Shown here: positions 22,301 through 46,471 of the stretch, piece after piece
Layout of the letters: the number at the start of each line of letters is the position of its first letter
How positions within the stretch are numbered: the first letter of the stretch is position 1
Assembly (NCBI GenBank): GCA_020891255.1
Contig: BQFW01000007.1
Coordinates: 62,001-126,000 of the forward strand
Direction of reading: 5' to 3'
DNA length: 64,000 nucleotides
Source of the DNA: Entomortierella parvispora E1425
Lineage: Eukaryota; Fungi; Mortierellomycota
Notes under the pieces: generated by a model
Seen by the model: only the letters and a program-made list of their open reading frames with translations
Database searches by the model: none
What the model was told of the DNA's origin: nothing
Made by a program: the position numbers and the translations under genes

Positions 22301-22650
22301 CTCGTCCAGGTAATCCACAAGACAGATATTCACAGGCATGTACGTCCTCGTCATCCGTGACCCCGTCTGCCTCGGTTGCTGGACTCGAAAACTCGTTTAG
22401 CGCTCTCGGCATCACCAAAGATAACTCCCAGGCATACACGCCTTTAACGGTAAGTGATGGCAGCGTAGGCTACAGTGGCTTCTAAAGGAGCAGAGTACTG
22501 ATGATAAGTGCACCAAACGTTCTAAACTAGACATCGATCCCCCCGCCCTTGCCTAGCAGGGCACCTCAATACCGCGAGCCAGTACATGTGGCTCCCGAAA
22601 GAGTACGTGCACCGCAACTATACCAACCGCAGTACTACCCAGACCCATAA
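19364..22650 (+). CDS. Derived EDE1 paralog: two EH domains, coiled-coil region, P/Q/Y-rich repeat tail; no third EH, no UBA (5 exons)
   Basis: LTAQEKPYYDELWAEAD..FFRRSGLNNATLDT|VWELADVEKHGVLGKNGFNVALRVI..|GPLPRFE..TLVHIW|RLAD..FDFTVAHYYI aligns by eye with EH1/EH2 of the EDE1 gene in this window. Last exon TSIPPPLPSRAP..YYPDP* (TAA 22648-22650). Confidence 0.8.
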
Positions 22651-23165: not shown

Positions 23166-25744
23166 ATGACCTGCCCGTTCCGACGCACATTCATCAACTC
23201 TGTCACGCTTCTTTCTCTCCTACTCCTCCTCTCCCTAAGATTTTCTTCATCCGTCTCGGCAGTTGTTACGAGGCCTCAATATGCCACAGTAAACGGAACT
23301 TTCTATATCCAAGGAGGGTCTCCCGACGGTGGAAATGCGACCAATGCATTCTTCTCCTTGAGCTTGTCAATACCTTGGAACGACACAGCAACTCCATGGG
23401 TAGACCTTCCAGACAATACTTCTGGAATATTGGCCCCTAGCTTATGGGAAAGGACTATGTCACTGACAGCAGACAACAAGCAACTACTCATCTGGAACAT
23501 GAATGCCACCCAGTCGACAATGTACAACATCTCAAGTGGGTGTTGGACCTACAAGGATCTCCCACAGATTTCAAACAGCATCGTAGGCGTAACGGCCTTG
23601 ATTGACCCAACAAGCGCCGGTCTCGGGACATTCTATGTGCCCAATGGTTGCAGGCTTCAGGCAATATCAGTACCATCCGCCACCCAAACAGGAACACCAG
23701 GCCTACCTACACCTCCTTTCCCAACCACAACCCCAGCAATAACCTGGACCATGTGTAAATATGATATGAGCATCAGTAACAGTAGCGTCACCAATGTTCT
23801 GATGATTAGCAATTCGTCAGTGCCAGACGGCGTTCTATATTATTCATTTGTACACTGCTCCGCGCGCAATACGTTCTTACTTTACGGAGGTATTGGGAAT
23901 AACCGTGCGGCTAACCCCAACCTGATCGAGTTCAATACAACTCAGTTGTCGTGGAATCTTATTGTAGGTTGTTTTCGACAGAGTTCAAGGAAGTAGGGTT
24001 ACCGACATTCCCAAACTGATTTTTTTTTTTTTTTTTTTTCTTTTTCGGATAATCGATGTCGCCTAATGACTCCAAATGAAGTCAGCTAAAGGCGAATCCC
24101 CTGGAGACATCAATTCCCATTGCATGGTGCAGAGTAACGCCACATGTTAAAGTTAATTACAACGATAGTAAAGGCATTGCTTCTGACAGGTTCTAATAGC
24201 TTTCTTTGTCAATATGAATAGCTACGGACGGGACGAGGATGATTGTATTTGGCGGAGTCAGCACCACGAATGTAGTATCATCAAAACTCTACATACTTGA
24301 TGTGGCCAATCTAACTTGGACTGCAGGAGCCAATGCTGGGGATGGAAACGCGAGATACGGACACGCCTGCACCACCTACGGCGATAACTTCATCGTGTGG
24401 GGTGGTAAGGAGTTTTTCTTCGATTTTTTTTTTTACGATCATCAAAAAAATTGCGACTACGGATGACCAACTAAAACAACTCTGCTGTCATATTCATGGT
24501 TTTTAGGTCAAAACTTGACGGTGATGAATAACACACCACTAATATACAGCATCCCCGTCAACCAATGGGTTCACAACTATGTTATCCCTGGAATTCCACC
24601 TCCCCTCCCAACAACATCAGTAGAGTCACAAACGCCACTACCCGGATCAACGAATAGCAGTGCCACCCCAGCATTTCCAGGAAAACCGTTTGGTCTTGGC
24701 GGAATCATTGGTTGTGCTGTTGGTGGAGTTGTCATCATTTCAGCCACGGGATTTTTGTTCTACAGGCGACACAGAAAAGCAAAACTGGAGGACTATGACT
24801 TCCCGCCGCTTCCGGAACTGCAAGAGGAGGATAGAGAGCATTTTAGGGTCTTCAGGAAGAAAGGCCTTATAGGTTGGGACGACGACGACGACGACGACGA
24901 CGAGGACAACAACTCGGTGTACGACAGTGACAACAATGGCTTTACAGATAAAAATGCAGCTCTACACCAGAGAGCGAGCAGGAAAAGTCATTTCTCCCCC
25001 ACCCTCCTAGAGTCTTCATCCGCTTCCACACTCGTTGTGCACCAGCCACCACCACCATCTCGTAGAAAGAAGCCCAAAGAGTCGACAACTTCAGGATACC
25101 CATCAGTTGTCACTGTCACGCACCAACTCCTAAGGGAGAGCTCTGCAGAGAGTCCTGAGCCACGACGTAAGCCTATGTCTCAGAGCTCAAGTTTTTCAAC
25201 TGCCAGCACTCCATCCACGCTAAACAATTCGATCGCGACAGTGGTGACAGTGTCACCATTGCCTTCGCCAAGTAAAGTTACATTTAAAAAAGTAACCGAA
25301 ACGATATCGGAGCCACAGCCGTCATATCAGGTCCATTCGAAAGGCCGTGGGAGGACAACACCCTTGATAACCTCCCGGAGTAGCAGTCCAGTCGTGCCCT
25401 CAAGTCGTCATTCCCCTCAGTACGTTCCTGTGGGATACGAGGGACATGATATCTGGGGTAATTGCGGCCAAGAGGGAGTTCGAAGTCCGCAACTGCATAG
25501 TCCAGGGTACGAAACCAGCCCTGCGGCCTGGATGGCCATGATGAACACAATTCACGCAGCCAAAGAGAAGCCCCAATGCCTTAGTTACCATAGGGCGAGC
25601 TCACCCCAAGCCATACTACCAGTAGAACTACGGAATCTCAACAGTAGTGGGTGTGACGATAGCCACAGAGGGCATCGCCCAACTAAGCCTAGACGGAAAC
25701 CAGTCTGGTCAGAGATACCGGATCAGGAGCCAAAAATAAAATGA
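23166..25744 (+). CDS. K1: kelch-like beta-propeller single-pass membrane protein (exons 23166-23963, 24082-24133, 24222-24404, 24507-25744)
   Basis: Signal peptide, YIQGG, FFSLSLSIPW, LLYGG, MIVFGG, GHACTTYGDNFIVWGG, PLIY..NQWV, S/T stalk, TM GGIIGCAVGGVVIISATGFLFY followed by RRHRK, and a tail with SPQYVP and TSPAAWMAMMN. Exon phases join in frame. Confidence 0.85.
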
Positions 25745-26179
25745 ATGACATGACAACAGCTGGAGACTGGTTGGCAAAGTCCAGAGATCCAAACGGTCAT
25801 TGAGCTGTCGACAGACTGTGGACAGACAGACAGTGGATGTGGTTGTGGTTGTAATCAAAAAAGAAAAAAAAACAAAAACGCGTCGCACAGGTGCTCTTTT
25901 AAGATTCTCACTGTTGAAACAAAAAAGCGGCCAAAGGGACGATGGAGGATCCCCGGCAATCGTCCAATCCAAAGAATAGGACATTCAAGTCTTCTTTCGC
26001 TGATCATGCTTTTCTCATCTTTCTTTCGCTTTTTTTTCACATCTTCCTCCACCACCACCACCTTAATCGTTGTCTCCCCATTCGACTGTATAGCTTTGCA
26101 TTAGAACAAGAGACATCAAAGCCTCACAGGTAATCAACAATTCGCCGCTCCTTCACTTTCACCTTTTACGCCTTTAAAG

Positions 26180-26930
26180 ATGTCTCTGATCCACCGCACG
26201 GTTGCCCTTGCATTTTACATCCTACCTTTCATACTGGTCAGCATTCGCGCGGGAAACGGTCAGTCTGTGCTTGCAACCACCTCTGACGCAGTTTACAGGC
26301 CTCACGCTGAACCCTTTATATTCAAGGGGGCACACCTGACCCTACTAGCACCTTCAGATTTTTACTCTTTGAGCTTATTGCAACCCTGGAACGACTCAAC
26401 GCCGCTGCCGAGGATCCTGCTTACCTCTACCAGTGGCGCAGATGCTCCTCATACTACTTGGTGTCTATTGCTAACAGCGCTGACAGGAGCACTCTGATCG
26501 AGTTTGATTTCAGTAGCCCCGGCCTCTCGTACTCGTTCAATGTTCTCCGCAAGGCCTGGTATAAATCCCACCTTCTGGAAACATTAAAGGTGCAGCAGAT
26601 ATTTGGTCTAAATGCCATGGTAGACGCCAAGAGCGACGGTCTTGGGACATTCTATACTCCCAATGAATGTCCAGATATGACTATGAATTTTACGAATTGG
26701 CACCTGCGCAAATAGTACATTTGGCACATTCATATCAAGGTAGCAATCCTGAAGTGTTCACACACCACAATCCCCGCAGTACGTTCCTGTCGGACATAAT
26801 GGATACGGCGTTTGGGGGGGATTCCAATAGATAATACGATACCTGAAGTCCACAACTAGCCAGATCAACCTACGATTCTAGCCCTGCCGTTTGACTGTCG
26901 ATGATGAACGCCACCCGTTCTGGCAATGAA
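26180..26930 (+). pseudogene. K2: internally deleted, frameshifted array member (propeller N-terminus joined to tail motif)
   Basis: Signal peptide, FYSLSLLQPWND and LGTFYTPNEC, then ~100 bp later QSPQYVPVGHNGYGVWG and *SPQLARSTYDSSPAV*LSMMN (stops 26844-26846, 26892-26894). No TM exon remains. Confidence 0.8.
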
Positions 26931-27599
26931 ACCCTGCAGAAACGACAAGACTCCGGAATCTCTATCCACGCATGGATCGAGCTCCTTTGAGGTGGCAACG
27001 AATGACGCCAACAAACATCAAGCACACAGTCATTTAGGAGTCAGTTTACGAGCTGTGTCCCAAATGAAATGAAATCGGAACCAGGACAAATCTGACATAA
27101 AAAAAAACTTGTTTGCAGCTTCCGGATTTTCCAATGGATGGTAAATGTGGTTGGGGCGCATGAGCAAACAAACGACAAGAAAACGCGTCAGTGTCACCGG
27201 AATCGCAGACACACCTGCCTGTTCAGACAGATGAGAAAGTAGGCAGGGTCCCCCGAATATGAAACAGAAAGCATGCTCAACAAGGAGGATGGAATGATGC
27301 AAGTTATTCGGACCATCCGCCGTAGATTTTGCTCTTTTGTCCATCTCTCTTCCTTTCCGCCTTCCATGCTCTACCTCTCTACTCCCCTCTCTCTCTCTTT
27401 CTCTCGCCCATTCCAAATCTCCTTCCGCCCTTGTCAGGGACTGAACTCTCCTCCGCCTGCTCCTCAACTGACCCTGCATCCGTCAACGGGAACCTGTGCA
27501 GACACCGGATAGTATCATCTGTCGATATCTTTCCCATCCTTTTCGTCGCTCCATCCGTTTCCCCCTCATCATTCCTACTTCTTCCTCGTATGTACCACT

Positions 27600-30103
27600 A
27601 TGACTTCCCGCTTCCTGCACTGGCCCATCATTACTGCTTATCTCCTTCCTCTTTTCCTCGTCCTCGTCATTTCTGAGACAAACGCTCAACCATCTACGCC
27701 TGTCGCGGTTGTTAGACCGCAGTACGCGTCGGTTAATGGCACCCTCTATATCCAAGGAGGGGCACCTGATGCTGTTCACCCAGTATCTGCATTCTATTCC
27801 TTGAGCCTGACAAAGCCGTGGAATGACACCGCGCCACTATGGAAGACACTCCCTACCAACTCTTCTGGTGTATTGGCGCCTACCATCTGGATGCAAACCA
27901 TGTCAGCGACTGCAGACTTGAAGCATGTACTTATTTGGGACTTCAGCAGCCCAAATATGTCGCCTTTGTTCGACATCAAAAGCAAGACTTGGACCAACCT
28001 GAATCTGCCACAGGTACCATGGGCCATCATTCACGGTCTTTGGCCACTTATCGACCCAGCAAGCGCTGGTCTGGGGACATTTTATGTACCCAATGGCTGC
28101 CAAGACAGCATTACCTCATACCCACCAGTGTGGTATATGTGCAAGTTGGACTTGACCACTGGTGATATCAACAGAAACATACAAATGAGTACCCAGATAG
28201 CAGGCGTCCTCTATTATTCGTTTGTCTACTGCAGTGCGCGAAACTCAATGATGCTCTATGGAGGATTCAAAACAGACACAAGTAATGTTGCGTCCGCTAG
28301 CCCGAACTTGTACGAGTACAATATGGTTGCAAATACATGGTCGCTCCTTGTAGGTGTTACTTTGTGCCTTTAGCCGAAAATATGTTCTTGGGTAGCGCAT
28401 CTGTGCGGCATTCTGCTTCTTAGTATTAACGCCCAATGGTTTGATATAGACAACCACGGGAACTCCTCCTGGAGATATCAACTCCCACTGCATGGTGCAA
28501 AGTAATGTACCGAATGCATTTGAAGGATAAATGACCGTTGCTGATTGCTGCAGTTGCTAACCAATAGCTCTTGTCTATGTCCTTAGCGTCTGATAAATCC
28601 AAAATGATCGTTTTTGGCGGTGTCAGTATAGGAAACCTGGTCTCGTCAAGACTTTACATCCTTTATCTGGGCAACCTCACCTGGGTACAAGGGGCTGATG
28701 CAGGAACGGAAAACGCGCGATATGGACATGCGTGTAGTACCAATGGCGATAGCTTTGTTGCTTGGGGAGGTGAGGGAATACGCTTTTATTTTGCAGGGCA
28801 ACTAACCGCAATGAGTTGCTTTGTCAGGCTAACAACAATGTTCGCATATTTCATTCATTTAGGACAAAGCTCGGCAATAATGAATAACACTCCCTTGATC
28901 TACAACATCCCGATCAACCAGTGGGTCCATGATTTCGTTGTCTCGGGCCCATTGCCTACACCGATCACTTCAACGTCGATTTCGACGTTAGCACCCACAG
29001 CAACCACGACCACGACCACGACCACAACCATGACCCATACACCATCCTCCACCCCATCCACCGACGTCGCTTCATATCCAAGGTCAACTCTCAGCACAGC
29101 AGGGGTCATTGGTGGCGCTGCTGGCGCCGTTGGTGGCGTCGTCATGATTGTTGCAATTGGAATTTTTATACGCAAGCGGCACAAGAAGGCCAAGTGCAAT
29201 GCCTATCTTCTTCCTCTTCCTTGGCAAAATGAGTATATGAGTTTCCAAAAAAAGCGAGACTTCGATAGGCCAAGCTTAAGGGATGATGGGTATGACGATG
29301 GTGACCAAGACAATGTCAGTCAGCTCCAGAATGGGGACAGAAAAGACGAAGGCGAAACGGTGCCCTACCCTCCATCTTCCTATCTGGAGGCCACCTCTTC
29401 CTCATCCACGCTTGTATATGACCAGACTGTACCATCTTACCAACACCATGTATACGGCGATACAGATTCAGAATCGACAAGCATCTCTGGCGCCGTACCT
29501 CGGCTCTCGTCGACGTCAGGGCCTATTGTAACCCCGCGATTGCGACACCCCACCTTTTCAACCATCAGCGCACCCTCTACCTCATCCAACTCTATCATAT
29601 CCGGGGTACCATTATCGGCCTTATCTCTGCCCATCAACATCTACAACAGAGGGAGGGCTACACCAGGACCTTCGCCGCTAAAGCTGTCGCAGCCAATTGA
29701 CGTTTATAGCTGCGACAGTTCCGACTATTGCCTGTCATCGGCATACCGTCAAGGCAATCCTGAGGTGTTATCATTCTACCAATCTCCTCAATATGTTCCA
29801 ATCGGTTATAATGGTCCAGCTGTGTGGGGAAATGGCCGTCAAGACGAGACACGAAGCCCACAACAACTTGGTTCCAGACACGTCACTAGCCCTGCAGCAT
29901 GGATGTCCATGATGTATGCAGCAAGATCAACCGTCGACGCGCCATATACTCGGAGAAACGGCGGTCTCGATGTCTCTCTCTCAGTGCAATCTGCTAAGCC
30001 TGTTAGGACTGGTGAAAGCGCTTATTTACAACCTCGACAAAGAAGCAGAGAACGATCAACGAGAAAATCTAGACCATACAAGGACGGACACAAAGAAGGC
30101 TAG
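27600..30103 (+). CDS. K3: kelch-like single-pass membrane protein (exons 27600-28349, 28450-28501, 28587-28769, 28863-30103)
   Basis: Same architecture and intron phases as K1. Poly-Thr stalk, TM GVIGGAAGAVGGVVMIVAIGIFI followed by RKRHKK, tail QSPQYVPIG..RSPQQLG..TSPAAWMSMM. Confidence 0.87.
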
Positions 30104-30553
30104 AGATACGGGGGTCACACCTTGACTGTCGCTTTCCTTTCTGCACAGATAATGTGGTTCTTGAGAAATAAAGTGCAAAGAGACGCGTCGTACAAGGGGT
30201 GTCTTTGCTCTTCAAAATTTACAAGCACCGTTGTTTCGCTTTGTTGTGCCCGAACACAAACGAGAGCGTCAGCTCAAAGAGGCAGGTCCACTTCCTGCTC
30301 CTAAACTGAAAGAAGTTAACGGTCCAGCAGACGTCCAATTTGCTTGAAAGATCCAGCTCAACAATTGTGTTTCTGTGGTTCAAACGCCCGTGACTATTTG
30401 CTTTTGGTTCATCCAGTCCTTTCGCCATTCCTTTTTCTCTCACCTTCCCTTCCTTGCCAGCAGCTTCATCCATATCCCACCTCTTTCAAACTGAAGATCA
30501 CCCTTGAAATCCGTCTTCCTCCACCTCTTTTCCTACCTTGATTCAACCGCAGG

Positions 30554-33072
30554 ATGGTTATGTTTCATAGCAGGCTCAAAAGATCCGTCGGGTTCCTGAC
30601 AGCTCTCTTGGCCTCTCATATCACACAAAACATCCTTTTTATCTCAGCTTACAGCCCTACATTAGTTTACAACTCCCAATATGCAACGATGAATGGGATC
30701 CTGTATGTTCAAGGTGGCGCTCCGGAGTTGTCGATCAGCCCCAGTGCATACAATGAATTCTTTTCGCTGAGTTTGACAAAGCCATGGAACGACACGGCAC
30801 CCCCATGGCAGGCTCTTCCCATCAACACTTCTGGTGTAGTGGTTCCAGCTCTTGCGGGTGGAGGGATGACTCCGACCCCAAATAACAGTAGTTTGGCTCT
30901 TTGGAATCCAAGCCTAAACCCAATAACCTGGGTTTTTCATCCCAAGAATAATACTTGGACCACGATAACCTATACACTTGGCTCTCTGCAGCTCAACATG
31001 GGAGGCACGGCTGTGATCGATCCTGAATCTGTGGACAAGGATTATGGGGACCTCTACGCACCGAATGCTTGCCGAGCCGTCAACACAAGCTATAACGCCA
31101 TGTGTGACTTCAGGGCCCCCTATTTTTTCAACGTTCTTCCAATGCCACCCTCGCCAAACCCCACCGATACAGTTGGTTTTTCCTTTACGTATTGCACTGA
31201 GAGAAAATCAATTCTGTTCTATGGCGGTCAGGGATACACAGGCGTCATCAATCCATATTTGTACGAGTATGTACCATCAGAGCAAATGTGGTCATTTCTT
31301 GTAGGTACAAAGGCCTGTGGGTCTGATGAAATAGTCGATGACACCTGCGCAATGATGCCGGGTCATTTTGTCGAGATTATGGGCACTGTCGCCGTCTAAA
31401 GCTGACTCGCTTACCTGTTATTGTCTTTTTTATCTTTATGTGAGCACAGACCCCACCTGGCAATTCGCCTGGAGATGTGAGCTACCATTGCATGGTGCAG
31501 AGTATGATAGAAGACACGCTCATTCCGAAAAGCTGTTATCTGCGACAGTTAGGACCGAGCACTAATGAGTTTCATTCTCACCATAGCTACAGATGCCTCC
31601 AGAATGATCGTTTTTGGTGGTGTGAACGCCCAGAACCAGTTTTCTTCGCGATTGTTTTTCCTTAACATGGTTAACTTCACTTGGACTGAGGGTGCCGATG
31701 CTGGTGCCATCAACGCCAGGGCAGGCCATGTCTGCGCAACCAATGGAGACAGTCTTGTCGTTTGGGGAGGTAAAATATCAGTTGAATGCCAACTTTCCTA
31801 GAAAAAACAACATATTGGTAATCTATTGATTCCACTAAACAATCTCTGTACCATGTCATCTTCGATTTGGCTTAACGCAGGGAGGAACACTACCATCAAT
31901 GTAATCAAGGACAAAACACCATTAATTTATAACATCCCGACAAACCAGTGGGTCCACGACTTTGTTGTGTCGGGCCCACTGCCGACATCAACGACCAATG
32001 TAACATCGACAGTAGCCACAACGGCGTCTGCTCCGACAACGACATCCACCCCGCCTGTCGCTTCGCCCACTCCGCCAAAAACCTCCAATTTGGGTAGTGC
32101 CATTGGTGCTATTGGTGCCGTCAGCGTCGTCGCTGCTGCTGTTGGATTTCTCTTTTTCAGACGACACAGAAGAGCGAAGAGCTGCCCATCTCCTCGATCA
32201 GCTACACTATCACATCAAAGTATCTTTGGCAAAACAGGAAGGTTCTTTGGGAGGAGTGCCAAAGATGATGGTGGTTACAGGGACGAGGTTCAGTCACAAT
32301 TCACTTCGAGCAAAGGTGCCAGAGAAACACCCTATCTGTCTCGCACTTCATCTGCGCCGTTCATGAGCCAGTTCATATCGCCATCATATCGACTGTCTAA
32401 TGAACATGAACTCGAAGCAGGTGATTCATTTCACCCAAACAAGGGAGATCCTCAGGACTCGATATCTAGCGCGCGTGGTGAATCCTTGCCCTTCGGACCA
32501 GATTCCTCCCTCAGGACCATGGTACCACAGTACTCAATGGCCACCAGTCCCAGTAAGTCACCTCTTCCGTCCAAGTTCCCAATAGTCAATATTTACAGTG
32601 CCCTCATCTTCTAATGTTGTTTACTTCCATAGATCCACCGCATCAACTCGGATACTACTTAGTTGACAAGGATGGGTATCTGACCTATAGAACGGGTCGC
32701 GATGATAATTCTTTTTATACGCCGCATGGCCACTCACCTCAGTTTGTACCGGGGGGGTCCAGTGGATACAGTGTATGGTCTGAAGGCGACCGGTTTGATC
32801 CCCGGAGCCCACAGCAGCTTGGGCCTGGATATGGGACGAGTCCTGCAGCTTGGATGGTAAGTATGAACATGGCCAGCCCCAGGAATGACCCTCGGTTTTC
32901 TAGTCGGATTGCTAGCGCGATTCCCCTATCGAGTCACAGCTCATACAGCCCATCTCCAACTGGACAGCTGGCTGTTCAGACAGAGTCGGACTTCATGCTA
33001 AAGAAGATAAAGTTGTTGAGGGCACAGCATGAACTCGAGATGGAAAGAGTCCGGCTGGAGCAGGAGTCCTAG
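30554..33072 (+). CDS. K4: kelch-like single-pass membrane protein with an extra tail intron (exons 30554-31300, 31450-31501, 31587-31769, 31881-32552, 32633-33072)
   Basis: Same architecture. An 80-nt phase-1 intron at 32553-32632 (GTAAGT..CTAAT..CATAG) joins the two ORFs in frame. Tail has SPQFVP, RSPQQLGPGYGTSPAAWM and KKIKLLRAQHELEMERVRLEQES. Confidence 0.83.
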
Positions 33073-33542
33073 GCGCAAACAACCCCGCACGGCTGAAAAA
33101 TATTTGCAGTAAACGCTAAATGGTTGCGCCATTGTACCGGTTTCATCTGTGTGTTTTGAAAGATGTGTTGCAGAAAGCATTCTCTTTCCAATACGCCAAC
33201 GACCTCTTAAAGAATGACAAATATTAAAGCCTGCTCTGTTTTATTTCATTCCTATCGGTCACTCTCAGCTTTCCTATGATGATTCTCACGCAAACGATGC
33301 TTATCTCTGTATGAAGAGGGGTGGTGTTTTTTTTCTTTTAGAACTGACGAGGGCAGGAATTGCTGGCCGCGCACAATTCTTTGCGTCACCTACCTGGTAA
33401 TGGTAGACAAACGTTCCAAGGAGACACTGACCGGAAAATTCTTATTGCTCTTGTCATGTTCCCAGGTTTAACCGTGGAAGGCGATTTTGCTGGCTTACCA
33501 AGGTTTGTTCATATCAAATGAGAGGGTAATCCCGGAGAGCAG

Positions 33543-33608
33543 ATGTGGTTCGTTGCAGTTGAGAGGGCACAAGTCTTTTTTTTTGGTCTGCTCACTCGTC
33601 TGTGTTCA
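33543..33608 (+). promoter_or_regulatory. Conserved upstream block of K5 (core GCTCRYYCGTCWGTGTTCA)
   Basis: Core at 33590-33608, with homologous cores upstream of K6 (36772-36790), K7 (40078-40096) and K8 (43538-43556), all 260-295 bp from the ATG. Confidence 0.55.
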
Positions 33609-33880
33609 AGAGCACAAAAGCAAGAAAGCGAGGCATTGCATTGTGCGTGCACACGTTATCTCTTTTGGGGTGTTGACCATTGGAGGTACTTTGGTTTCCT
33701 CCAGCAGCCGACATCTTTCTCATTCACCAGTTTGCTTCTTTTCTTCCTTTTCCTCCCTTCCCCTCACTAATACTGCCTGTTTCCTCCAAACGCTTCTGTC
33801 TATCCCTCTGGGCACGAACTTTTCGACCCAGACAATTCACTTCACTGTTCTCAGCTTTCTTCTCCTGCCTCAACACTATC

Positions 33881-36400
33881 ATGGAGCGTCTACTCCATAG
33901 CATCTTCTTTGCTGTTGGCGCTGCTCACCTATTGTTGTTGATCTTTTCTGTCCAAAACACCCCTTTTGTGTCAGCAGCTCCGCCAATTGTTGTTACCGGC
34001 TCAAGATATATCACCGTAAACGGGACTCTCTATGTGCAGGGAGGGGGTTCACTCTACGCTCAAGGTGGGGCATTCACAGACACCGATGGGACTACAGCCT
34101 TCTCATCTTTGGACATGTCGGTACCCTGGAACCAAACATCGCCTCCATGGAAGGCCATCGTTGCCCCTGCTGGTTTTCTTACCCGAGATATCATATACCA
34201 GGGACTCGCAGTGACTCCAGACAAAACTCGACTGGTTTTCTGGGGATCCTTTAATGCGCCACCCGAAGCTGGATCCTTGAGTATACTCAATATCCCGAGC
34301 AATAGTTGGAGCAGCTTGACTGTCACACAGAACCCCAATCTGACGAGCTGGGGCATTTCCGCCGTAATCGACCCCACGAGCGGGGGCATGGGAGTTTTGT
34401 ATGCTCCAAGTGGTTGCACAGAGCAGATTACTGGCACAGAGAATGCCATTCCTGGATTATGCATGATTGGATTAGACAAGAAGACAACTACTTATCAAAC
34501 AATGTCCAGACTCCTCGTACCGAGTGGCATCGCTTATTATTCTTTCGTCTATTGCACGCTGAGGAAGACAATGCTTCTTTATGGGGGAGCGGGTGCGAAC
34601 AATGAGCCCAATCAGAGTTTGTACGAGTTCTCCCCTTCCAACTCGACTTGGTCGTTGCTTGTACGTTAGTGCTTCTCAACTCTTTGTCTTTTCGGTCCCC
34701 GATGCGCAAGAAATCGTTGCAAAAGAAAGAAGTCGTGGGATGAATAACTAATAGCTTCACTGATCTCCCACCATAGCAACCACAAGGGACTTCCCCCGGC
34801 GATATCCAGCGTCATTGCATGGTAGAGAGTATGTCGCAAGTCTGTTCCCAATTCACTTCTGTTAGACAGGCACCAAAAAAAAGTCGAACTCTAACCTTCC
34901 TTTCTTCGCTCCATAATAGCCACAGATGGCACCAAGATGATTGTGTTTGGTGGGATGAACGTCGGACTGCAGGTGTCGGCACGTCTTTCTATTTTCCATA
35001 TCAAGAACATGACCTGGACAGACGGGGCCGATGTGGGAGCAGCCAATGCCAGAATGGGTCATGTCTGTGCAACAAACGGCGACAGCTTCATTGTCTGGGG
35101 AGGTAAGGAACGCAATCGCATCGATCTTCTGACAAGATATCTTCTAACATCAATTGTGCTCGTCCTGATAGGACTGACACTGCAGAACGGCAAAGCTGTG
35201 GTGGTGAACAATGTCCCGTTGATCTATAACATCCCAAAGAATGAATGGGTCCACAACTTTGTAGTTACAAACCCTCCACCTCCAACCCTCTCAAATGCGA
35301 CATTGACGTCGACAATGACAGGACCCATGCCTTCTTCATCAGACAATGCCTCTTTATCCTCTCCCTCGGAAAAGTCCTCCAACGTGGGGGCCATTGTCGG
35401 TGGAGCTGCGGGAAGCATTATCGCTGTCGCCGCCATCGGATTTTTCATGTACAGACGACGCAAGGGAAACGGTCTATCTCACTCGAAAAGGTCTGGGGAT
35501 GGCAATCTAAGAAGATCGATGATTCTGAACGGCGGCGGAAATGACATTGAAGACGACAAGGATGCATGCGGCAACCATTCCGGCGCAAACGCAATTCAGC
35601 TCCAAAGTGAATCGGTCCAACGCTCAGTCGATTCATATTCTCACTCTCCACCTCATTCTGTGCAACAGTTCCAGTCATCCCCACTGCAGACTAAAAATTC
35701 GTTCGCGATGCATGGGGGTAACTCAAGGGAACTCAATCCGGAGATTGATATGAGAGGACACCACGGAAGGTCGTCAAGTGAGTTAGGGTCGCCGCGGTTT
35801 TCAGGATCCAAGTTTTCAAATCCACCACCCCCTTTTCAATCAACCTTGTCACTGTCTCCCGCCGGCAGTCCGCAGGCGTACCTTGGCCCCTTTCCAATGG
35901 ATCAACAAAACCATCCGTATTATTACGACAAAGGGAGGAGTGACTTCCCAAGTCCTTTCAGGGGTCTTGATCATACCAATATCCTGTACAGCGATTATCC
36001 TCAATTCACTCCAATTGGATTGGATTCACAGGGTAACCGATTTGATCTCCGAAGTCCTCAGCAGCCAGGACCAGGAGTGGAGACGAGCCCGGCAGCATGG
36101 ATGGCGGCGATGAACACACGCAACTCTTTTGGCAATTCCCATAGATTAATTAATCATGGATCGCACGTCAGTGGCCATATTGGTGGCCTTGGTTCATACT
36201 TCCCGCCTCCACCAGGACTACAGTCACCAGCAGAGCCAGAACCAGACCTGCTCCAAAAGAAGTTGATGCTGATGAAGGCACAACATGAGCTAGATGTGGA
36301 GAAGATGCGGCTAGAGCAAGAATCACAGCGACATTTAGTTGAGCGGCAGTTGGTGGAGAGGCAACTTGGTCCAGCAGCGGATAAGTGGAACCACATGTAG
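33881..36400 (+). CDS. K5: kelch-like single-pass membrane protein (exons 33881-34660, 34777-34828, 34920-35102, 35172-36400)
   Basis: Start MERLLHS; YVQGG, LDMSVPW, MIVFGG, TM VGAIVGGAAGSIIAVAAIGFFMY followed by RRRK; tail RSPQQPGPGVETSPAAWMAAMN, SYFPPPP and KKLMLMKAQHELDVEKMRLEQE. Confidence 0.88.
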
Positions 36401-37080
36401 TTTCTGCAGAGTGCTTCCTTCCATTATACTGTAGTTTTTTTTTTTTTTTTTTTTTTTTTTCAATTTTCAAACATATTGATAGCTTGATCTAAGTATCTAA
36501 GTATCGTCTGTTCAGGATCAACCTCGTTTTCCTGGAGACGATGGACAACTCATCGGAAGGGCGCAGATGACAAATAACCATGGAGATGTGTGACAGTCCC
36601 TTGAGTTTGGTCACAACATCGATATTCCTCATCTCCAGGAATTACATTACCGGGCTCAGTCGTGCAGGTGTTTGGCTACCTTACCAAGGTTTGATCATTT
36701 CGAAAGAAAGACAAGGAGTATGTGGTTTGTCGCAATTGAGAAAGGGCGCGTTGCACAAGGGTGTTTTTCTTGCTCGCTCGTCAGTGTTCAACGCCAAGAG
36801 GGCGTGCTAGACTGCATTGCAGGTCAGGATAGAGCATTGCTGTCTTTGAAGTTGAGCCACAGGAGGGACATGAATCCCCGGGTTGCTGTTTTTCTTTCTT
36901 TGATAAGTGATTTTTCTCTCTTCTTCGTTTTTTTCTTTTGCCTTCCTCTCTTTTCTTGATACAGCTGCCTGTCATCTCCACAAACCCATATGCACACATT
37001 GGACTTTCCCTTCAAACCTTCAATCTAAGACCATCCCATCCCCTCTCCTATATATTCTCTATCAACTTTCTACTCTCTCC

Positions 37081-39626
37081 ATGAACGCTCTCGTGGAGCG
37101 TCTGATTCATCGCATGGTGCTAATTGCAGCCAGCGTTGCTCCTTTGTTTCTGGCTATCATTTCGCTGCAACACGTGCCGTTTGTCAATGCAGCTCCACCT
37201 ATCGCGGTCGGTGGCGCTGCATACGCAACCGTGAATGGAACTCTCTATATACAGGGGGGAGGCATTTTCCGCAGTCAAGAACCTACGGATGTCGAGACTG
37301 ACTCAACAAACATGTCATCTCTAGACCTATCAATCCCCTGGAACGATACATCACCTCCATGGAAGCTCCTCAACGACGGTGTTTCTGGAAGGAGCCGCGC
37401 TCACACTCTATTCCATGGAATGGCCGTCTCTCCAGACAAAACCCAGTTGGTCTTGTGGGGTTTACAGCAGCTGAACCCGGACGATAGATTCCTGATTACA
37501 TACAATATCCCGGGAAATACTTGGAGCGACATCATTTTCGCACCTAGTCTGCAAACTCTTGGTTTTGTTTCGGTGGTCATCGATCCTACAAGTAGAGGCA
37601 TGGGGGTTATGTATGCTCCTGCTGGTTGTTATTCAGGTGCAACTATGTTGGGCATGTGTCTGAATAACTTGGACAAAAGATTGATGACTTATGAGTCCAT
37701 GCCCAAAAGCCTGATGCCCGATCGCATCAATTTTTTCTCCTTCGTTTATTGCACATTGCGCAAGACAATGTTGCTGTACGGAGGGGTGGGGGGGAACAAC
37801 AATGAGACCAATCCGAATCTGTACGAATACTCCCCCTCCAACTCGATCTGGTCATTGGTTGTAAGTCATCGCCTCTCCAATCCATTCACACATCACATAA
37901 TGGTGATGAAGAGAATTGTATGATTGTACAACTATGTGATGAGAAGCTAATAGATTTACCTCCATTCCGATACAGGTACCACAGGGTAATCCTCCTGGCG
38001 ACATCCAGCGTCATTGCATGGTAGAGAGTATGTCGCAAGTCTGTTCCCAATTCACTTCTGTTGGACAGGCACCTACAAGAATACGAGCTCTAATATTCCT
38101 TTCTCGCATTTGACCATAGCCACGGATGGCACCAAAATGATCGTGTTTGGTGGGATGAACCTCGGACAACAAGTCAAGTCACGTCTTTCCATTTTCCATG
38201 TTGAAAACATGACCTGGACAGAAGGAGCAGATGCGGGAGCAGCTAATGCCAGAATGGGTCATGTCTGTGCTACCAACGGTGACAGCTTTGTCGTCTGGGG
38301 AGGTAGGAATAATACTCACACCAACTTTTTGGTAAAATAACCTCTAACCTCAGCGTTGTTGCTCCATTAGGATTGACCCTTCAGAATGGTAAAGCTGTGA
38401 TGACAAACAATATCCCATTGATCTACAACATCCCCAAAAACAAATGGGTCCACACCTTTGTAGTCACAGATCCTCCTCCTCCTATCCTCTCCAACACGAC
38501 ATCAGCATCGACATTCACAAGACCAATGCCTTCTCCCTCAGACAATGCTTCTTTACCCTCCCCCTCGGTAACGTCGTCCAGTGTTGGAGCGGCTGTTGGT
38601 GGAGCTGTAGGAGGCATTGCAGCTGTCGCTGCCATCGGATTTTTTATTTTCAAACGACGCAGGCGAAGAGGAAACATTGCCCGTAGTTCGTCGCAATCAA
38701 AAGGATTAAACAGCGACCATCATATGAGATCCAAGGCTCAGAACGGTGGAGGCAACGCTTCAGACGACATAAATTCATATGACAACAATCCTGGCTCAGC
38801 TGTGCTTCAGCTCCCGAGCACATCGGTCCAACGCCCAGCTCATCCGTATTCTCACTCTCCGCCTCATTTTGTGCAACAGTTCCAGTCATCACCACTGCAG
38901 ACTGAACAGTCATTCCTTCTGCATGGAGGCAACTCATGGGAATTAAAGCCCGATAATATGAGAGGTCACGATGGGAAACAGGGCGAACCAGGGTCACCAG
39001 GGTCTTGGGGAATCAGTTCGTCTCTACATTCGCCTCCTTCCTTTCAATCAACGATATCACCGTCTATGACCGGAAGTCCACAGGGATTTATCAGATCCTT
39101 CCCTGTAGATCAACAACATTATTCGCATTTTTACGACGGAGCGAAGGCCGACTCCCAAGGTCCCTTCAGGAGTATCAATCATCACTCAACTGATATGCCG
39201 TACAGCGGATATCCCCAATACACTCCAATTGGATTGGATTCACAGGATAGCCGACTTGATCTCCGTAGCCCCCAGCAGCCAGGGCCAGGAGTGGAGATGA
39301 GTCCGGCAGCATGGATGGCGGCGATGAACACCCGCAGCTTTTTTGGCAATCCTCACGGTGCGATCGGTCATAGATCACACGTCAGTGGCGAGATTGGTGT
39401 CCTTGGGTCATACTTCCCGTCTCCACCACTTGGTTCATACTTCCCGTCTGCACCAGGACAACAGTCGCCAGCACAGCCAGAGCCGGATCTAATCCAAATG
39501 AAGTTGATGCTGATGAAAGCACAGCATGAACTGGAGTTAGAGAAGATACGTCGAGAACAAGAATCACAGCGCCAATTGGTTGGGCGGCAGTTGAATGAGC
39601 GGCAGTTTGCGTCCGGCAGTGAGTGA
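37081..39626 (+). CDS. K6: kelch-like single-pass membrane protein (exons 37081-37860, 37976-38027, 38120-38302, 38371-39626)
   Basis: Closest relative of K5. Same exon phases, tail motif, and coiled coil MKLMLMKAQHELELEKIRREQE. Confidence 0.88.
39402..39455 (+). repeat. 27-nt tandem duplication in the K6 tail (LGSYFPSPP LGSYFPSAP)
   Basis: cttgggtcatacttcccgtctccacca followed by cttggttcatacttcccgtctgcacca (2 mismatches). Confidence 0.9.
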
Positions 39627-39797
39627 GGCTATTTCAAACGATTTTTTCGTAGCGAGCTTCCATCATAATAATGCTTAATGTGTAATGACCAGAGGAGTGT
39701 GGGATGTTGTATCTATTGACTCTCTTCATGCAGCAAGAAAAAGAGAGCCAAGCCGTTGAAAGCTGAATCAATTTCGCCCTGCGTGACACAGAGAACA

Positions 39798-39820
39798 GCG
39801 CTGGCCAATCAACTCCGACA
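39798..39820 (+). promoter_or_regulatory. 23-bp element containing a CCAAT box (GGCCAATCA), identical upstream of K7 and K8
   Basis: gcgctggccaatcaactccgaca at 39798-39820 and 43251-43273. Confidence 0.5.
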
Positions 39821-40388
39821 AAAGTTGGGCTGAAAAACTTTGGATTGCAAGGAGGGGAGGGTTTCCCACAGAAGTTCTTGCTACAGGATCTGTGGTTCTT
39901 CAGACTCAGAAGGCAGGTCAATTACCGAGTTCTGCCATGGAGGGTTCTATGGTTCGAGGTATCCATGACGGTTGCTGGCACTCTCAAGATTTAACGAAAA
40001 AGATGATCCAGAGAGCGTGTGGTTTTGTTTTCCTATTTTGTTGAGGTGGCGGGTCGCACAAAGAGTTTTTTGTTATTGCTCATCCGTCTGTGTTCAGGCC
40101 AAAGGGAGAGAGGCGAGATTGGCTTGCATATCAACACGACAGAGCAGTGCCATTGTCGAAGTGAAGCCGTGAAGGAGGACGGTACATTTCTTTCAGCGGC
40201 CGTCTTCCCGCCTTTCCCCTCTTTGTTTCGTTCCATTTCCCTGTCAGGAACACTCCCTCCCCTTCAAAGCTCGGTGAGAGAGCTGGCCCGTCTCCTCGCC
40301 CCCTGTCCATTTTCCAGGACGACTCTCCTTTCCATCCAACAACACTGCCTACTCTTTTCAACGATTTTACTCCTGCCTCAACACCACC

Positions 40389-43015
40389 ATGGAGCGCCTA
40401 CTCCATCGCGCGCTCGTCTCTGCCTTGAGCATTGCTCCTTTGATCCTGTTTGTCTTATCAGTGCAAAACATTCCTCTTCTCTCGTCAGCTGCACCTCAGA
40501 CGGTCAACGGTGCTAGATATGCCACTGCGAATAACACTCTCTTTGTGCAAGGAGGATATTATGTCATTCCTACAATGCCAGCAACACCCTTTTCAGCCTT
40601 GGACTTGTCAATCCCTTGGAATGTCACGTCACCGCCATGGAGGACAATTGAGCTTGGGGATTCGGTCCAGCTTACAAATATACATCAAGGAATGGCTACT
40701 ACACCAGACCAAACACGGTTGGTCTTTTGGGGATCTTTCACTGGCCCTCTCAATAACTCTGTGGTCATTTACAATATACCAAACAATACTTGGAGTACTT
40801 TGACATTCACCGCGGCTTACGTAAATTCAGTGGTGTCCCCAATACCGATTCCACTTCTGGGTACAGGTATCTCGGCAGTGATCGATCCAGCATCTGCAGG
40901 AAAGGGCTTAGGGGATTTGTATGCCCCAGATGGCTGCTCCGAAGAAGCTCTTTCTCTCATGTGTCGAGCGACTCTGGGCACCAAAACATACGGTATCGCT
41001 CCAATGCCTGGTGGCTTGGTGCCCTCTGGCATCCAGTACTTTTCCTTTGCGTATTGCACAATAAGGAAGTCGATGCTTCTATATGGCGGAATGAGCCCGA
41101 TGAACGTGAGCAATCCGAATCTGTACGAGTTCATTCCGTCAACTTCCGCCTGGTCATTGCTTGTAAGGCATTGCTTGGAATCTTGTACCACGTGGAAAGT
41201 ATATCTCTGAGAAAACTGTAAGATGGGCAGCTAATAGGTGTACTTTCTCAATATAGCAACCGCAGGGCACCTCTCCTGGCGATGTATCGGGTCACTGCAT
41301 GGTCGAGAGTATGTTGCAAATGCGACTAGTTCACTTTTGGTTGCTGAAATGGATGCTAATCATCTTTTCCTTCGGAATCTCAGCCACAGATCGGTCCAAG
41401 ATGCTTGTATTTGGGGGTATGAACACAGCGATGCAAACCTCCTCACGTCTTTTTATTCTGAATCTCGATACTATGATCTGGACAGAAGGAGCCGATGTTG
41501 GAGCAGCCAGTGCTAGAGCATATCATGTCTGTGGAACCAACGGCGACAGTCTTGTAGTCTGGGGAGGTACAGAAATGTCGATAGTATTTGGTGGATTGGT
41601 TCCTATAGCTCCTAAATTTAACCCAACCCGCTGATATTGATTACTGGATGTTAGGCGCGATTGTTATTAATAACCAGCAAGTGGTGGTAAACAATATTCC
41701 CTTGGTTTACAATATACCAAACAACACTTGGGTCCAAACATTTGTTGTCTCGAACGCCCCTCCACCCACTACATCGGCATCGACATCGGTATCGGCAGGG
41801 CCCACTTCTACCCCTTCAGGAAATATCGCTCAGCCTTTCCCTGAAAAAAAATCGTCCGATGTAGGAGCTGTGGCAGGTGGCACTGTCGGATGTATTGCAG
41901 CCATTGCCGCCATCGGATTTTTTTTTTACAAATGGCACAAGAGAACAGGAAAGAGCGGTGATCGCCCATCACAAACGAAACGGTCAGGAAAAGACAGCAG
42001 CTCGCGATTCGGAATGAAAGGAGGATTCATAGGAAGAACAAGTAATAGGGACGATGACGACGAGGACGACACAGATCCTTACAGTGACTACCCTGAACCA
42101 CGTGCAATCCAGCTTCAGAATACATCGGGACAACACACAAGCGACCCGTACCTGTCTTCGTCCCCCCATTTTTCAAAGCAGTCCCAGTCATCCTCGGTAG
42201 CAATGTCGCCTCCACTTCTCCAGCTTCTGCCCTCTCGACCAGAGACTCAAACCAGAAACACATTATTATCTTATGGCAGCAATCCGGCAGATCCGAGGCT
42301 CAGTACGATGGACCACAGTGGAGTATCCTCTAGAAATATAGACTCATTGAGGTTCTCGGGAATCAATTCATCTCTGCCTGCTGCTTTCCCCTTCCTGCCA
42401 CTGCAATCGACATCACCGTTTCCTCTAAACGGTAGTCCACAGGGACAACAAGGATCTCTAAGCTTTATACCAGTGGATTCGCACGGGCATTCAATTTATT
42501 ACGATGCAAACAGGAATGCCTTCTCTGCCGGCAGTCAACAAGGGTCTTTTCCAACAGCATCACTAAGCCAGCCGAATTGCTACGATGGACGCAACAGTAA
42601 CTTGTCTGGATCTGTCAATAGTCCCGATTCACATTTAACCTGTACTCCGTACAGCAACTCTCCTCAGTACAGTCTCATTGGATCAGACAGACCGGGCATT
42701 CACGGCGATTATCGAAGCCCACAGCAGCCTGGGCCGGGAGTTGAGACCAGTCCGGCAGCATGGATGGCGGCGATGAACACACGCAACTCTGTTGGCAATC
42801 CTCATAGTATGATCAATCAAGGATCGTACCACAGTGGCAAGATTGGTGGTCACGGTTCATACTATCCACCTCCACCAGGACAACAGTCGGAGCCCGACCT
42901 GACAGAAAAAAAAAGGAAGTTGATAAAGGCACAGCATGAACTGGATGTGGAGAAGATGCGATTAGAACAAGAATCGCAGCAGCAATTGATCGGGTGGCAG
43001 TTGTTTGAGCGGTAG
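40389..43015 (+). CDS. K7: kelch-like single-pass membrane protein (exons 40389-41162, 41257-41308, 41384-41566, 41655-43015)
   Basis: Start MERLLHRAL; same exon structure; TM VGAVAGGTVGCIAAIAAIGFFFY; tail motif, SYYPPPP and coiled coil. Confidence 0.88.
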
Positions 43016-43818
43016 TCTGCTTTCTGGCGGCTGGTGAATAAGATCATGTATAGCTTCTGTGGTAGAAAACTTCCACCGTAGTAATATCCAGTAGTCCAGT
43101 AAAGTAAATAACGATATCCAAGAACATGGAGAGCGCCAATGGAGTCTATTCAATTTCATCCAACGGCTTGGCTCTCAGTGTTGCATGCTCCATTTCTTGC
43201 TGCTGGCCATGACTGAATCAATTTCATCTGGGGGGTGACACAGAAAACATGCGCTGGCCAATCAACTCCGACAATCACACTGGAACTAAGATACTTGTGC
43301 TGACGGGGGAAAGGGGTGAGGGCCAGAAGTTGTTGATACATCCATATTCCTTCAGTATGAGGACCAGGTCATGTTACCGAGAACAGTCATTTAGGGCCCG
43401 AGGGTTCGATGTATCCACGGTGGTTGATGACCTTTCAAGATGTGATGAGAAGATGATCCAGAAGTGCGTGTGGTTTGTTCTATTTTATTGTTGAGTGGAC
43501 ACGTCGCACAAAGATTTTTTTTTTTTTTTGTGTTATTGCTCACCCGTCTGTGTTCAGGCACAAAGAGAGATGCAAGATTGGTTTGCATATCAGCAGTGAA
43601 AGAGGACAGTGCATCTCTTTCAGCGGCCCTCTTCTCGATTTCTCCCATTTCTCCCCTCTTTGTTTCCTTCCTTTTCCTGTCAAGATCCCTCTTCCCCTTC
43701 AAAGCTCGGTGATAGAGCTGACCCGTCTCCTCGCTCCCTGTCCATTCACCAGGACTCTCTTGTCCGATCCAAGACTGTTCGCTCTTTTCAACGTCTTCAC
43801 TCCTGCCCCAACGCCACC

Positions 43819-46471
43819 ATGGAGTGTCTGCTCCATCGCGCGCTCATCTTCATTGCCAGCACTTTTCCTTTGTACCTGGTCCTTTTTGCCCTGCAAAATA
43901 TCCCTTTTACATCATCGCAATCACCTGTTGCGGTCGTCGGCCCCGGATATGCCACGGCAAGCGGCAAACTATATATCCAAGGCGGTCTGACGATTATTAA
44001 CGATCTAATTAATCCTTTAGCCGCAGAAACATCAGCTTTCTTTTCCTTGGACTTGACAATCCCCTGGAACGTCACGTCCCCTCCATGGAAGTCTATCAGT
44101 GTCGGCAATGAATTTCCCGTCGCAAACAGTTACCAGTCGATCGCTGTTACTCCGGATAAAACCCGGTTGGTCTTTTGGGGATCCTTTAGTCCCCCTCGCA
44201 ATACTTCTTTACTTGTATACAATATCCCGAACAATACTTGGAGCACTACGCCAATCATACCGCTCCTGAAGCCGGGCCAATTGACGGCAATACCTCTGGG
44301 CAACTATATGTCGTCAGTGATCGATCCAGCATCCACAGAAAAGGGTTTAGGGGTTCTGTATGCACCAAGTGGTTGCTCCGACACCACTGTCAGTTATCCC
44401 CCAGTTGAAGAAGGCCTCTGCCAGACGGATTTGGACAAGAAGACATTCGCCGTCGGCTATATGCCTGGAGGCCAGGTGCCTGCAAACGTCCAGTCCTATT
44501 CCTTCGTATACTGCTCAACACGGAAGTCGATGATGCTATACGGAGGTAACGGTGGAACCAACCTGATCAATCCAAGTTTGTACGAGTTCAATCCATCAAC
44601 TGTGTCTTGGACATTACTTGTAAGTCAGTCCTTTCTGCCTGGAGTCTTCTTCCCGGTAGATATTTAAAAGAATCTGTAGGACGGGAACTAATAGGTCTGC
44701 CTTTTTCTTGATACAGCAACCGCAGGGAGGAGCCGCTCCTGGAGATGTCTCGGGCCATTGCATGGTCGAGAGTACGTCGCCAATGTGCTCTAGTTTACTT
44801 TTTGTTTGTTGCAATGGATCCTAACCATATTTTCCTCATTTGCAACTGCAGCCACAGATGGTTCGAAGATGCTTCTGTTCGGGGGCATGGATATTACAGG
44901 GAAAACCTCATCACGTCTTTTTATTTTGAATCTCAACAACATGACCTGGACAGAAGGAGCCGATATTGGAGCGGCCAATGCCAGATCAGGTCATGCCTGC
45001 GCTACCAACGGTGACAGTCTTGTTGTCTGGGGGGGTAAAGAAAATATTCACTGTATTTCGGAAGTCCTGATCTTGTTTTCTTGCCAAAGCAACCACTAAC
45101 TTCGATCATGGTAAGCTAGGGATAATCACCGCGAACAACGCGGCCGTGGTGGTAAACAATATCCCATTGGTGTACAATATTCCAAACAACACTTGGGTCC
45201 AAAACTTTCTCGTCTCCAAAGCCCCTCCCTCTCCAACATCGGCATCGTTGGCGCCTACCTCCACCCCAACAAACACTATCACGCAGCCGCCTCCTCCTGA
45301 AGAAAAATCATCCAATGTGGGTGCTATTGCCGGTGGTGCTGTCGGATGTGTTGCAGCCATTACCGCCTTCGGATTTCTCGTCTACACATATCGCAAGAAC
45401 AGGAGAGATAGTGATGATCGCTCATCACAAATGAAACGGTCGGAAAAAGACAATAGCTCGCGATTCGGCAGAAGAAACAACAGAAACGATGACGATGAGG
45501 AGGATGACACAGATCCTTACAGTGACTACCTTGGTTCACGTGCGATCCAGCTTCAGAATGCGTCGACACAGCACACAGTCGACCCGTACTTTGCTTCGTC
45601 ACTCCACTTTTCGCAGCAGTTCCAGCCATCTTCATCAGCAATGTCGCCGCCACTTCACCAGCATCTGCCTCCCCAACCAGAGATGCAAGCCAGAAACACG
45701 CCGCTCTCTTACGGAGGTAGTCCTGCCGATATGAATCTTGGCACGATGAACCCAAGCGGAGTATCCTCGGGCGAGCTAGATTCACTCCGGTTCTCGGGGA
45801 TCAGTTCGTCTCCACCTCCCCCTTTCGCCTTCCCCCCACAGCCATCGTCTGTGTCATTGTCTTTGAGCGGTAGTCCACAAAGAGAGGAGGGTTTCGTCAA
45901 CTTCATACCAACAGATTCGCACGAGCAGCCAATTTATTACGATAAAGGAAAGAATGCCTTCTCTACCGGCAGTCCACAAGCATCTTTTCCAAACTTATCA
46001 GTAGGCCAGTCGACTTACTACGATGGACGCAACAGTGTTCTCTCTGGCTCCTTCAAGAGTCCTGATGCCCTTTTAACCAGTACTCCGTACAGCACCTCTC
46101 CTCAGTACATCCCCATTGGATCGGACGGACAGGGTCTCCGCGCGGACTATCGAAGTCCACAACAGCTCGGACCCGCAATTGAGACCAGTCCAGCGGCTTG
46201 GATGGCGGCCACAAGTGCGCGTAACTCTATCGGTAACCCTCACAGAGTAGTCAGCCATGTGTCGGATGTCAGTGGTCCAGTTACCAGCCGCGGTTCATAC
46301 TACCCTCCTCCACCAGGGCATCAATCGCCAGCGCCAGCAGAGTCGGACTTGATGCAGAAGAAGCTGAAGCTGATGAAAGCACAGCACGAACTGGATTTAG
46401 AAAAGATGCGATTGGAGCAGGAGGCACAATTGCAGATAGTCCAGAACCAGCTTTTTCAAAGCAGTGGATGA
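43819..46471 (+). CDS. K8: kelch-like single-pass membrane protein (exons 43819-44619, 44717-44771, 44852-45034, 45120-46471)
   Basis: Start MECLLHRAL; closest relative of K7; 55-nt microexon; tail RSPQQLGPAIETSPAAWMAA and KKLKLMKAQHELDLEKMRLEQE. Confidence 0.88.

Follow-up and report, generated by a model that had tools for sequence, protein, structure and literature searches.

Few surface receptors have been characterised in early-diverging fungi, and the outputs of many of their single-pass 'hypothetical' membrane proteins are obscure. Better described are the kinase-less sensors of yeast, Wsc1 and Mid2 in cell-wall integrity signalling and Opy2, Msb2 and Hkr1 in the high-osmolarity glycerol (HOG) pathway, which combine a glycosylated ectodomain, a Ser/Thr-rich stalk, one transmembrane (TM) helix and a disordered tail. 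Short conserved patches in these tails bring in a cytosolic effector (Rom2; Ste50), and phosphorylation of Ser modulates them. In animals, attractin has a cytoplasmic tail that is plain except for one short conserved motif. Here we analyse 64,000 nucleotides (the window) from Entomortierella parvispora E1425 (contig BQFW01000007.1, positions 62,001 to 126,000), a fungus known to house endobacteria. The window contains a tandem array of nine paralogous genes, K1 to K9, for predicted type-I membrane proteins with a Kelch propeller. The tails of most of them share a block of about 45 residues, and the substitution patterns show purifying selection on the encoded peptide.

The block and the proteins that carry it

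The product of each array gene starts with a signal peptide, continues with a six-bladed Kelch propeller and a Ser/Thr/Pro stalk, crosses the membrane with one helix and ends in a disordered tail of 300 aa. Kelch models are the sole Pfam matches: K5 scores 82.2 bits with PF24681 and 61.4 bits with PF24981 (Attractin/LZTR1 beta-propeller), against a cut-off of 50 for each, and K4, P0019 and P0011 give similar scores. An AlphaFold2 (AF2) model of K5, built with 18 homologs, has a confident propeller at approximately residues 40-370 (predicted local distance difference test, pLDDT, mostly 70-96), a signal-like N-terminal helix at 2-25 and a TM helix at 413-436 that is followed by YRRRK. The tail has pLDDT <50 apart from two helices, one short (645-655) and one long and C-terminal (696-744, pLDDT ~90). 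In Foldseek, the propeller matches solved six-blade Kelch domains with TM-scores by target of 0.70-0.77. Because the TM helix precedes YRRRK, in agreement with the positive-inside rule, and because N-x-S/T sequons are concentrated in the ectodomain (5-9, versus 0-4 in the tail), the K proteins are best modelled as type-I surface proteins with a predicted cytoplasmic tail and no kinase or other enzyme domain. A kinase-less receptor-like protein with a cytoplasmic block is also what the preliminary description of this locus had proposed, and both the Pfam result and the predicted topology uphold it.

A six-frame scan finds SPAAW seven times, on the + strand only, with the Ser codon starting at 25517 (K1), 29888 (K3), 32839 (K4), 36086 (K5), 39300 (K6), 42749 (K7) and 46187 (K8). 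The array and its copies of the block are as follows.

23166..49851, + strand: tandem array K1-K9, nine paralogous genes for type-I Kelch-propeller membrane proteins, carrying the motif copies
25412..25546, + strand: K1 block, SPQY..W..RSPQL..TSPAAWMAMMN; the tail ends soon after, without a coiled coil; ortholog in the metagenome contigs L003/L004
26771..26915, + strand: K2, what is left of the block in a pseudogene; SPQYVPVGHNGYGVWGG is in another frame than SPQL..SSPAV*LSMMNAT
29783..29917, + strand: K3 block, SPQY..W..RSPQQ..TSPAAWMSMMY; without a coiled coil
32734..32868, + strand: K4 (EMPS_04827) block, SPQF..W..RSPQQ..TSPAAWMVSMN
35996..36115, + strand: K5 (EMPS_04828) block, YPQF..RSPQQ..TSPAAWMAAMN
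39210..39329, + strand: K6 (EMPS_04829) block, YPQY..RSPQQ..MSPAAWMAAMN
42659..42778, + strand: K7 (EMPS_04830) block, SPQY..RSPQQ..TSPAAWMAAMN
46097..46216, + strand: K8 (EMPS_04831) block, SPQY..RSPQQ..TSPAAWMAATS
49579..49668, + strand: K9, decayed remnant LRGPQQMDPMSISMMDG without the Trp helix; profile score 5.8 bits, N-half only

These positions agree with those of the preliminary description, whose consensus was somewhat too strict. SPAAWM is identical in all seven copies, but the longer TSPAAWM, given there as invariant, occurs in six, K6 reading MSPAAWM. The three S-P sites ascribed to the block are present in K1, K3, K4, K7 and K8, whereas K5 and K6 have YPQ[FY] at the first of them. 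The middle pattern is looser than claimed (RSPQLHSPGYE in K1, RSPQQLGSRHV in K3 and RSPQQLGPAIE in K8). K2, described as degenerate, does have an altered block but is in fact a pseudogene spanning 26180-27500. Its exon-1 remnant, which starts at 26180, is frameshifted; the end of the propeller, the TM helix and most of the tail have been removed by an internal deletion; and the block persists, split over two frames, with a TGA (26892) where Trp should be encoded (SSPAV*LSMMNAT).

The block can be read as three pieces in fixed order and with nearly fixed spacing: [SY]PQ[YF]xPxG, RSPQ, and an N-capped helix S-P-A-A-W-[MIVT]-x-x-M-N. Among the 18 sequences collected, which represent two species or more, Q, G, R and P-A-x-W never vary, and RSPQ and SPAAW are always separated by exactly eight residues (18/18). 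K1, K3, K4 and their orthologs have five additional linker residues, including a second Trp. The residue following the motif Trp is M, I, V or T, and a Met four residues past it is retained in most copies. In K8 and three relatives, the motif Trp is the sole Trp of a tail of 350-390 aa. The two halves can occur apart: P0009 has three YSNSPQYVP units in tandem and RRPQQ, yet reads MSPAANL, and K9 and its ortholog retain a weak R[GN]PQQ with the helix lost. Thus, where the helix has been lost (K9, P0009), the N-half is decayed or reshaped.

When 14 tails are aligned and scored in windows of 12 columns, conservation peaks at GPGYETSPAAWM (0.84) and SPQYVPIGSDGQ (0.70), followed by the C-terminal coiled coil (0.60), against a median of 0.375. 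The flanks are therefore barely alignable, as had been noticed at first sight, and the block is the top-conserved island of the tail, inside predicted disorder. By these alignments it qualifies as an island of the short linear motif (SLiM) type, conserved within predicted disorder while its flanks evolve faster.

Selection and distribution

Since the repeats are homologous copies, chance is not at issue, and the question is one of selection versus recent copying. In the seven paralogs, each invariant residue whose codon is degenerate is encoded by 2-4 different codons. For deep paralog pairs and between subfamilies, the proportion of synonymous differences (pS) in the motif is 0.60-0.86 and mostly saturated, and the proportion of nonsynonymous differences (pN) is 0.22-0.30, compared with 0.39-0.60 in the rest of the exon. 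Orthologs were compared in three clean syntenic pairs (K1, K3, K4) with a related metagenomic species, the rest of the cytoplasmic tail serving as comparison. Here pN is 0.133 in the motif versus 0.254 in the rest of the tail (Fisher p = 1.4e-6), and pS is 0.566 versus 0.536 (p = 0.64). Because motif pS equals that of the remaining tail while pN is halved, it is the peptide rather than the DNA that is conserved. Synonymous sites as conserved as nonsynonymous ones, which the preliminary description had named as the mark of recent conversion, are not what these pairs reveal. The between-subfamily and between-species comparisons, on which our reading of selection is based, thus show purifying selection maintaining the block in the encoded peptide while the remaining tail drifts. 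The synonymous divergence also rules out that the metagenome relatives are contaminant copies of the same genome.

A profile of 50 block positions was searched against 1.84 billion representative proteins (E <= 0.001). The 13 matches comprise three E. parvispora proteins, nine metagenome fragments of the same Kelch family and one spurious repeat peptide. This search, which had been suggested as a check for fungi at large, recovered the motif in the array and its close relatives but gave no wider fungal occurrence, and these matches indicate a motif restricted to the array and to orthologs within a narrow Entomortierella-like clade. As the motif is not shared with other families, a 'common effector' would apply only within the array; likewise, confinement to a narrow clade makes any result lineage-specific and not a general fungal rule.

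Searches of other kinds added little. A degenerate DNA pattern, RSPQ(N24)SPAAW, matched eight loci in the Joint Genome Institute (JGI) metagenomes, two of them real (L013 and L014) and both from an already known relative; the other six were rejected as chance matches in GC-rich open reading frames (ORFs). A metagenome search for related loci with the K5 tail found none, and a word-indexed search with the K5 motif proved insensitive, recovering only three window paralogs and missing K8.

The array, with its gene order unchanged, recurs on metagenome contigs of a related species. One of them (L008) has an intact K2-like gene (1601-2677) together with a K3-like and a K4-like gene, a K1-like gene is found on L003 and L004, and on L001 a K9-like gene comes after a K8-like one. 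The decayed K2 of E. parvispora versus the intact K2-like gene of a related species indicates that the array undergoes birth and death of members. In another genus of Mortierellaceae, Gryganskiella cystojenkinii has three Kelch-TM genes in tandem, with the coiled coil (L009, JAAAIG010000911.1, 2410-12879), which shows that the family forms such arrays outside Entomortierella as well. The Gryganskiella tails resemble the block by eye (SPQY..GWG..RSRSPQV..QPWMMAMNNN and ..THSWMMAN), with profile scores of ~0 bits and a pairwise BLASTP E of 0.02; remote kinship is possible, and statistically marginal. In Mortierella sp. GBA30 the coiled coil is present (twice) and the motif is absent.

Possible functions of the block

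The best explanation, in which we have moderate confidence, is that the block is a composite SLiM that a lineage-specific Kelch-propeller family carries in its disordered cytoplasmic tail and that would serve as a fold-on-binding dock for a shared cytosolic partner. Docking is our best guess at the function. The Trp-Met helix would fold on contact, and its Trp and Met side chains would enter a pocket of a cytosolic partner common to all paralogs. The PQ[YF]xPxG and RSPQ pieces may supply extra contacts or regulation, possibly via phosphorylation of the RSPQ Ser. In this way, diversified ectodomains would converge on a single intracellular output. Consistent with a docking role for the Trp, the codon that became a stop in the dead gene K2 is that of the Trp itself.

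AF2 predicts a helix in the isolated K1 module (residues 44-58, pLDDT ~70), and both this helix and that of K5 (645-655) start at the Pro of SPAAW. A mini-domain consisting of a hairpin and a helix was considered and rejected, AF2 showing the helix alone in the isolated module. The short amphipathic helix of the preliminary description is thus half retained: the helix is predicted, but it is not amphipathic.

Several observations weigh against a docking motif. First, the confidence of AF2 in the helix is modest, and its Eisenberg hydrophobic moment is low (0.07-0.25 over PAAWMxxMNxx). Second, the block fits no motif class checked (NPF, DP[FW], PPxY, YxxPhi, LIR). NPF, DP[FW] and PPxY are missing from every window tail; among the other sequences, NPF occurs once, in one relative, and PPxY once, in P0011. 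YxxPhi does not hold, as K4, K5 and R4 have Phe, M2a and P0012 have His, and K4 has Gly at the Phi position; the LC3-interacting region (LIR) pattern [WFY]-x-x-[LIV] does not hold either, the Trp being followed by M-A-A, M-A-M, M-S-M or M-V-S. Third, the profile search found the motif in no other family among the 1.84 billion proteins, which leaves a general docking code without independent support. Finally, in the closest pairs motif pS lies below flank pS (0.25 vs 0.50 in K5/K6; 0.19 vs 0.38 in M1a/M2b; ~41 codons), and some of the identity within the subfamily of these pairs may stem from local gene conversion.

Gating by a proline-directed kinase, another suggestion of the preliminary description, receives mixed support from the sequence comparisons. 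In its favour, the RSPQ Ser is nearly invariant (S-P in 16/18 at the second site), and one of the two exceptions, RDPQQ in the K3 ortholog, is a phosphomimetic change; the other is RSSQQ in M2b. Against it, the first site has Tyr in four sequences (Y-P in K5, K6, M2a and P0012), with S-S in P0007, and M2b lacks both the second and the third site. The third site is S-P in 17/18, with N-P in M2b (TNPAAWT), and its conservation is explicable without phosphorylation because the Ser is the helix N-cap and the Pro is N1. As a separate observation, the Ser of RSPQ and of SPAAW is encoded by AGY in every copy and ortholog examined, and the replacements at these Ser (Asn AAC, Asp GAT) are a single nucleotide step from an AGY codon.

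Alternatively, the block may be a trafficking or turnover signal, [YF]xP[IV]G and the Trp helix being recognised by sorting or endocytic factors or by ubiquitin ligases that control how much receptor is at the surface. The tails are long, Ser/Pro-rich and equipped with acidic patches, like many regulated cargo tails; Y-x-x-I/V occurs in 5 of the 7 copies; and Ede1-like endocytic scaffold genes flank the array. However, the Tyr has changed to Phe in K4 and K5 and to His in a relative, and a canonical YxxPhi tolerates neither. Besides the absence of NPF, DPF/W and PPxY, no consistent di-leucine motif is present in any tail, and gene adjacency in a fungus is weak evidence. We therefore regard such a signal as rather unlikely.

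A wider claim, which strikes us as quite unlikely, is that SPQY-RSPQQ-SPAAWM constitutes the shared output module of a fungal receptor system confined to this lineage, in which the Kelch ectodomains sense varied ligands and address one effector via the Trp helix, with the RSPQ Ser as a phospho-switch. The S-to-D replacement at this Ser in one ortholog would fit this proposal. If true, fungi would have in this module an equivalent of the tail motifs of immunoreceptors or of the receptor-like proteins of plants.

A structural or self-interacting helix, which binds the inner leaflet, its own tail or a neighbour's tail and needs no outside partner, is decidedly improbable. An S-P at the start of a helix is an N-cap/N1 signature, and AF2 begins the helix exactly there; moreover, Trp prefers membrane interfaces. 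Nevertheless, the same low moment is accompanied by no flanking basic cluster, AF2 shows the helix unpacked against the coiled coil or any other part, and K1-K3 keep the helix without having a coiled coil. A helix of this kind also leaves the conserved PQ[YF]xPxG and RSPQ, 12-35 residues upstream, unexplained.

The last alternative, that the copies owe their identity to recent duplication or gene conversion, or to an element at the nucleotide level, with no selection on the peptide, is suggested by the tandem arrangement and by the low motif pS of K5/K6 and M1a/M2b, but it is extremely improbable given that core residues stay identical between subfamilies with saturated pS (0.6-0.86), that pN is halved at equal pS in the orthologs, and that K1-K4 order and motif are retained in a second species at pS ~0.45-0.66. 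Neutral copying was rejected accordingly for the between-subfamily and between-species comparisons.

Array context and known systems

A second conserved tail module is present in K4-K9, a C-terminal helix KKLxLMKAQ[HY]ELxxExxRLEQE, which corresponds to the long, confidently modelled helix of K5 and is probably an oligomerising coiled coil. Its positions, with other features of K5, are given below.

33001-33066, + strand: K4 coiled coil
35384-35464, + strand: K5 TM helix
36197-36214, + strand: K5 YFPPPP
36257-36322, + strand: K5 coiled coil
39498-39563, + strand: K6 coiled coil
42908-42973, + strand: K7 coiled coil
46358-46423, + strand: K8 coiled coil
49753-49824, + strand: K9 coiled coil

In K5-K8, [YF][YF]P[PS]PP precedes the coiled coil. 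K9, P0009 and P0011 have the coiled coil without the motif, and K1-K3 the motif without the coiled coil, a distribution that marks the two as separate modules. Being present in both Mortierella sp. GBA30 and Gryganskiella, the coiled coil is older than the SPAAWM block.

The K genes have four exons, the first large and the second small; everything from the last strand of the propeller onwards (stalk, membrane helix and entire tail) is encoded by the last one. K4 has an extra intron within the tail (canonical GTAAGT..AG, ~32552-32634), upstream of the motif block. K4 to K8 match the annotated E. parvispora proteins EMPS_04827 to EMPS_04831. E. parvispora is a soil fungus of the Mortierellomycota, neither a basidiomycete nor an ascomycete, whose genome was published in 2022, with gene models built with RNA sequencing (RNA-seq) hints (PMC8759367). 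A divergent family member on the minus strand (50325-51146, ..IIYNIQSQQWVTQF..) has a stalk and a TM helix, without motif and without coiled coil. Two long low-complexity Ede1-like ORFs flank the array, at 19364-22650 (+) and 54693-57545 (-); in the downstream ORF, a coiled-coil stretch and, at the C terminus, a UBA domain (PF00627, 22.7 bits) are recognisable. As the Kelch tails have no NPF, there is no evident EH-domain link to these ORFs. Further away, a long ORF at 10520-13600 (-) with an F-box-like segment and WD40 repeats is Cdc4/Fbw7-like by eye and unrelated to the array.

Among known proteins, the best Swiss-Prot structural match is ARB_01230 of Trichophyton benhamiae (UniProt D4AYG1; query 33-515, E 5e-15), which covers the propeller, stalk and membrane helix and has the same layout as the K proteins: a signal peptide, a Kelch propeller, one TM helix and a tail. 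However, sequence identity is 18%, and the SPAAWM block would not be expected there, as the motif profile finds nothing outside the Entomortierella-like clade. The literature on ARB_01230 and on Kelch transmembrane proteins of fungi or Mortierella yielded nothing functional, ARB_01230 being mentioned in passing once. Attractin and attractin-like proteins of animals also combine an extracellular Kelch propeller with one TM helix, and PF24981 reaches 61 bits on K5; they differ in having additional CUB, EGF, C-type lectin and PSI domains and an unrelated tail motif, and nothing indicates orthology.

Immunoreceptor tyrosine-based activation and inhibition motifs (ITAM/ITIM) and plant receptor-like proteins are alike in concept only, in that diversifying ectodomains obtain their output from one tail motif or co-receptor. 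The K tails have no YxxL/I pair and no sequence relation to any of these, and no SH2-type reader is known in fungi. The yeast sensors share no sequence similarity with the K proteins and are not of the same family: their ectodomains are of WSC or mucin type instead of Kelch, and their docking patches are unlike SPQY, RSPQQ and SPAAWM. Look-alikes of the tail in the ESM Atlas score at most 0.73, below the useful range, with an Opy2-family cluster at 0.53 that is a lead only.

By analogy, then, the kinase-less yeast sensors would be the closest in function, and fungal type-I Kelch proteins, more remotely attractin, in architecture, none of them sharing the motif. A selected peptide of 45 residues that persists across diverging ectodomains is a ready bait for an intracellular partner of the whole receptor-like family. 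The block is new and lineage-restricted, but of a familiar kind, namely a conserved SLiM in a receptor-like tail.

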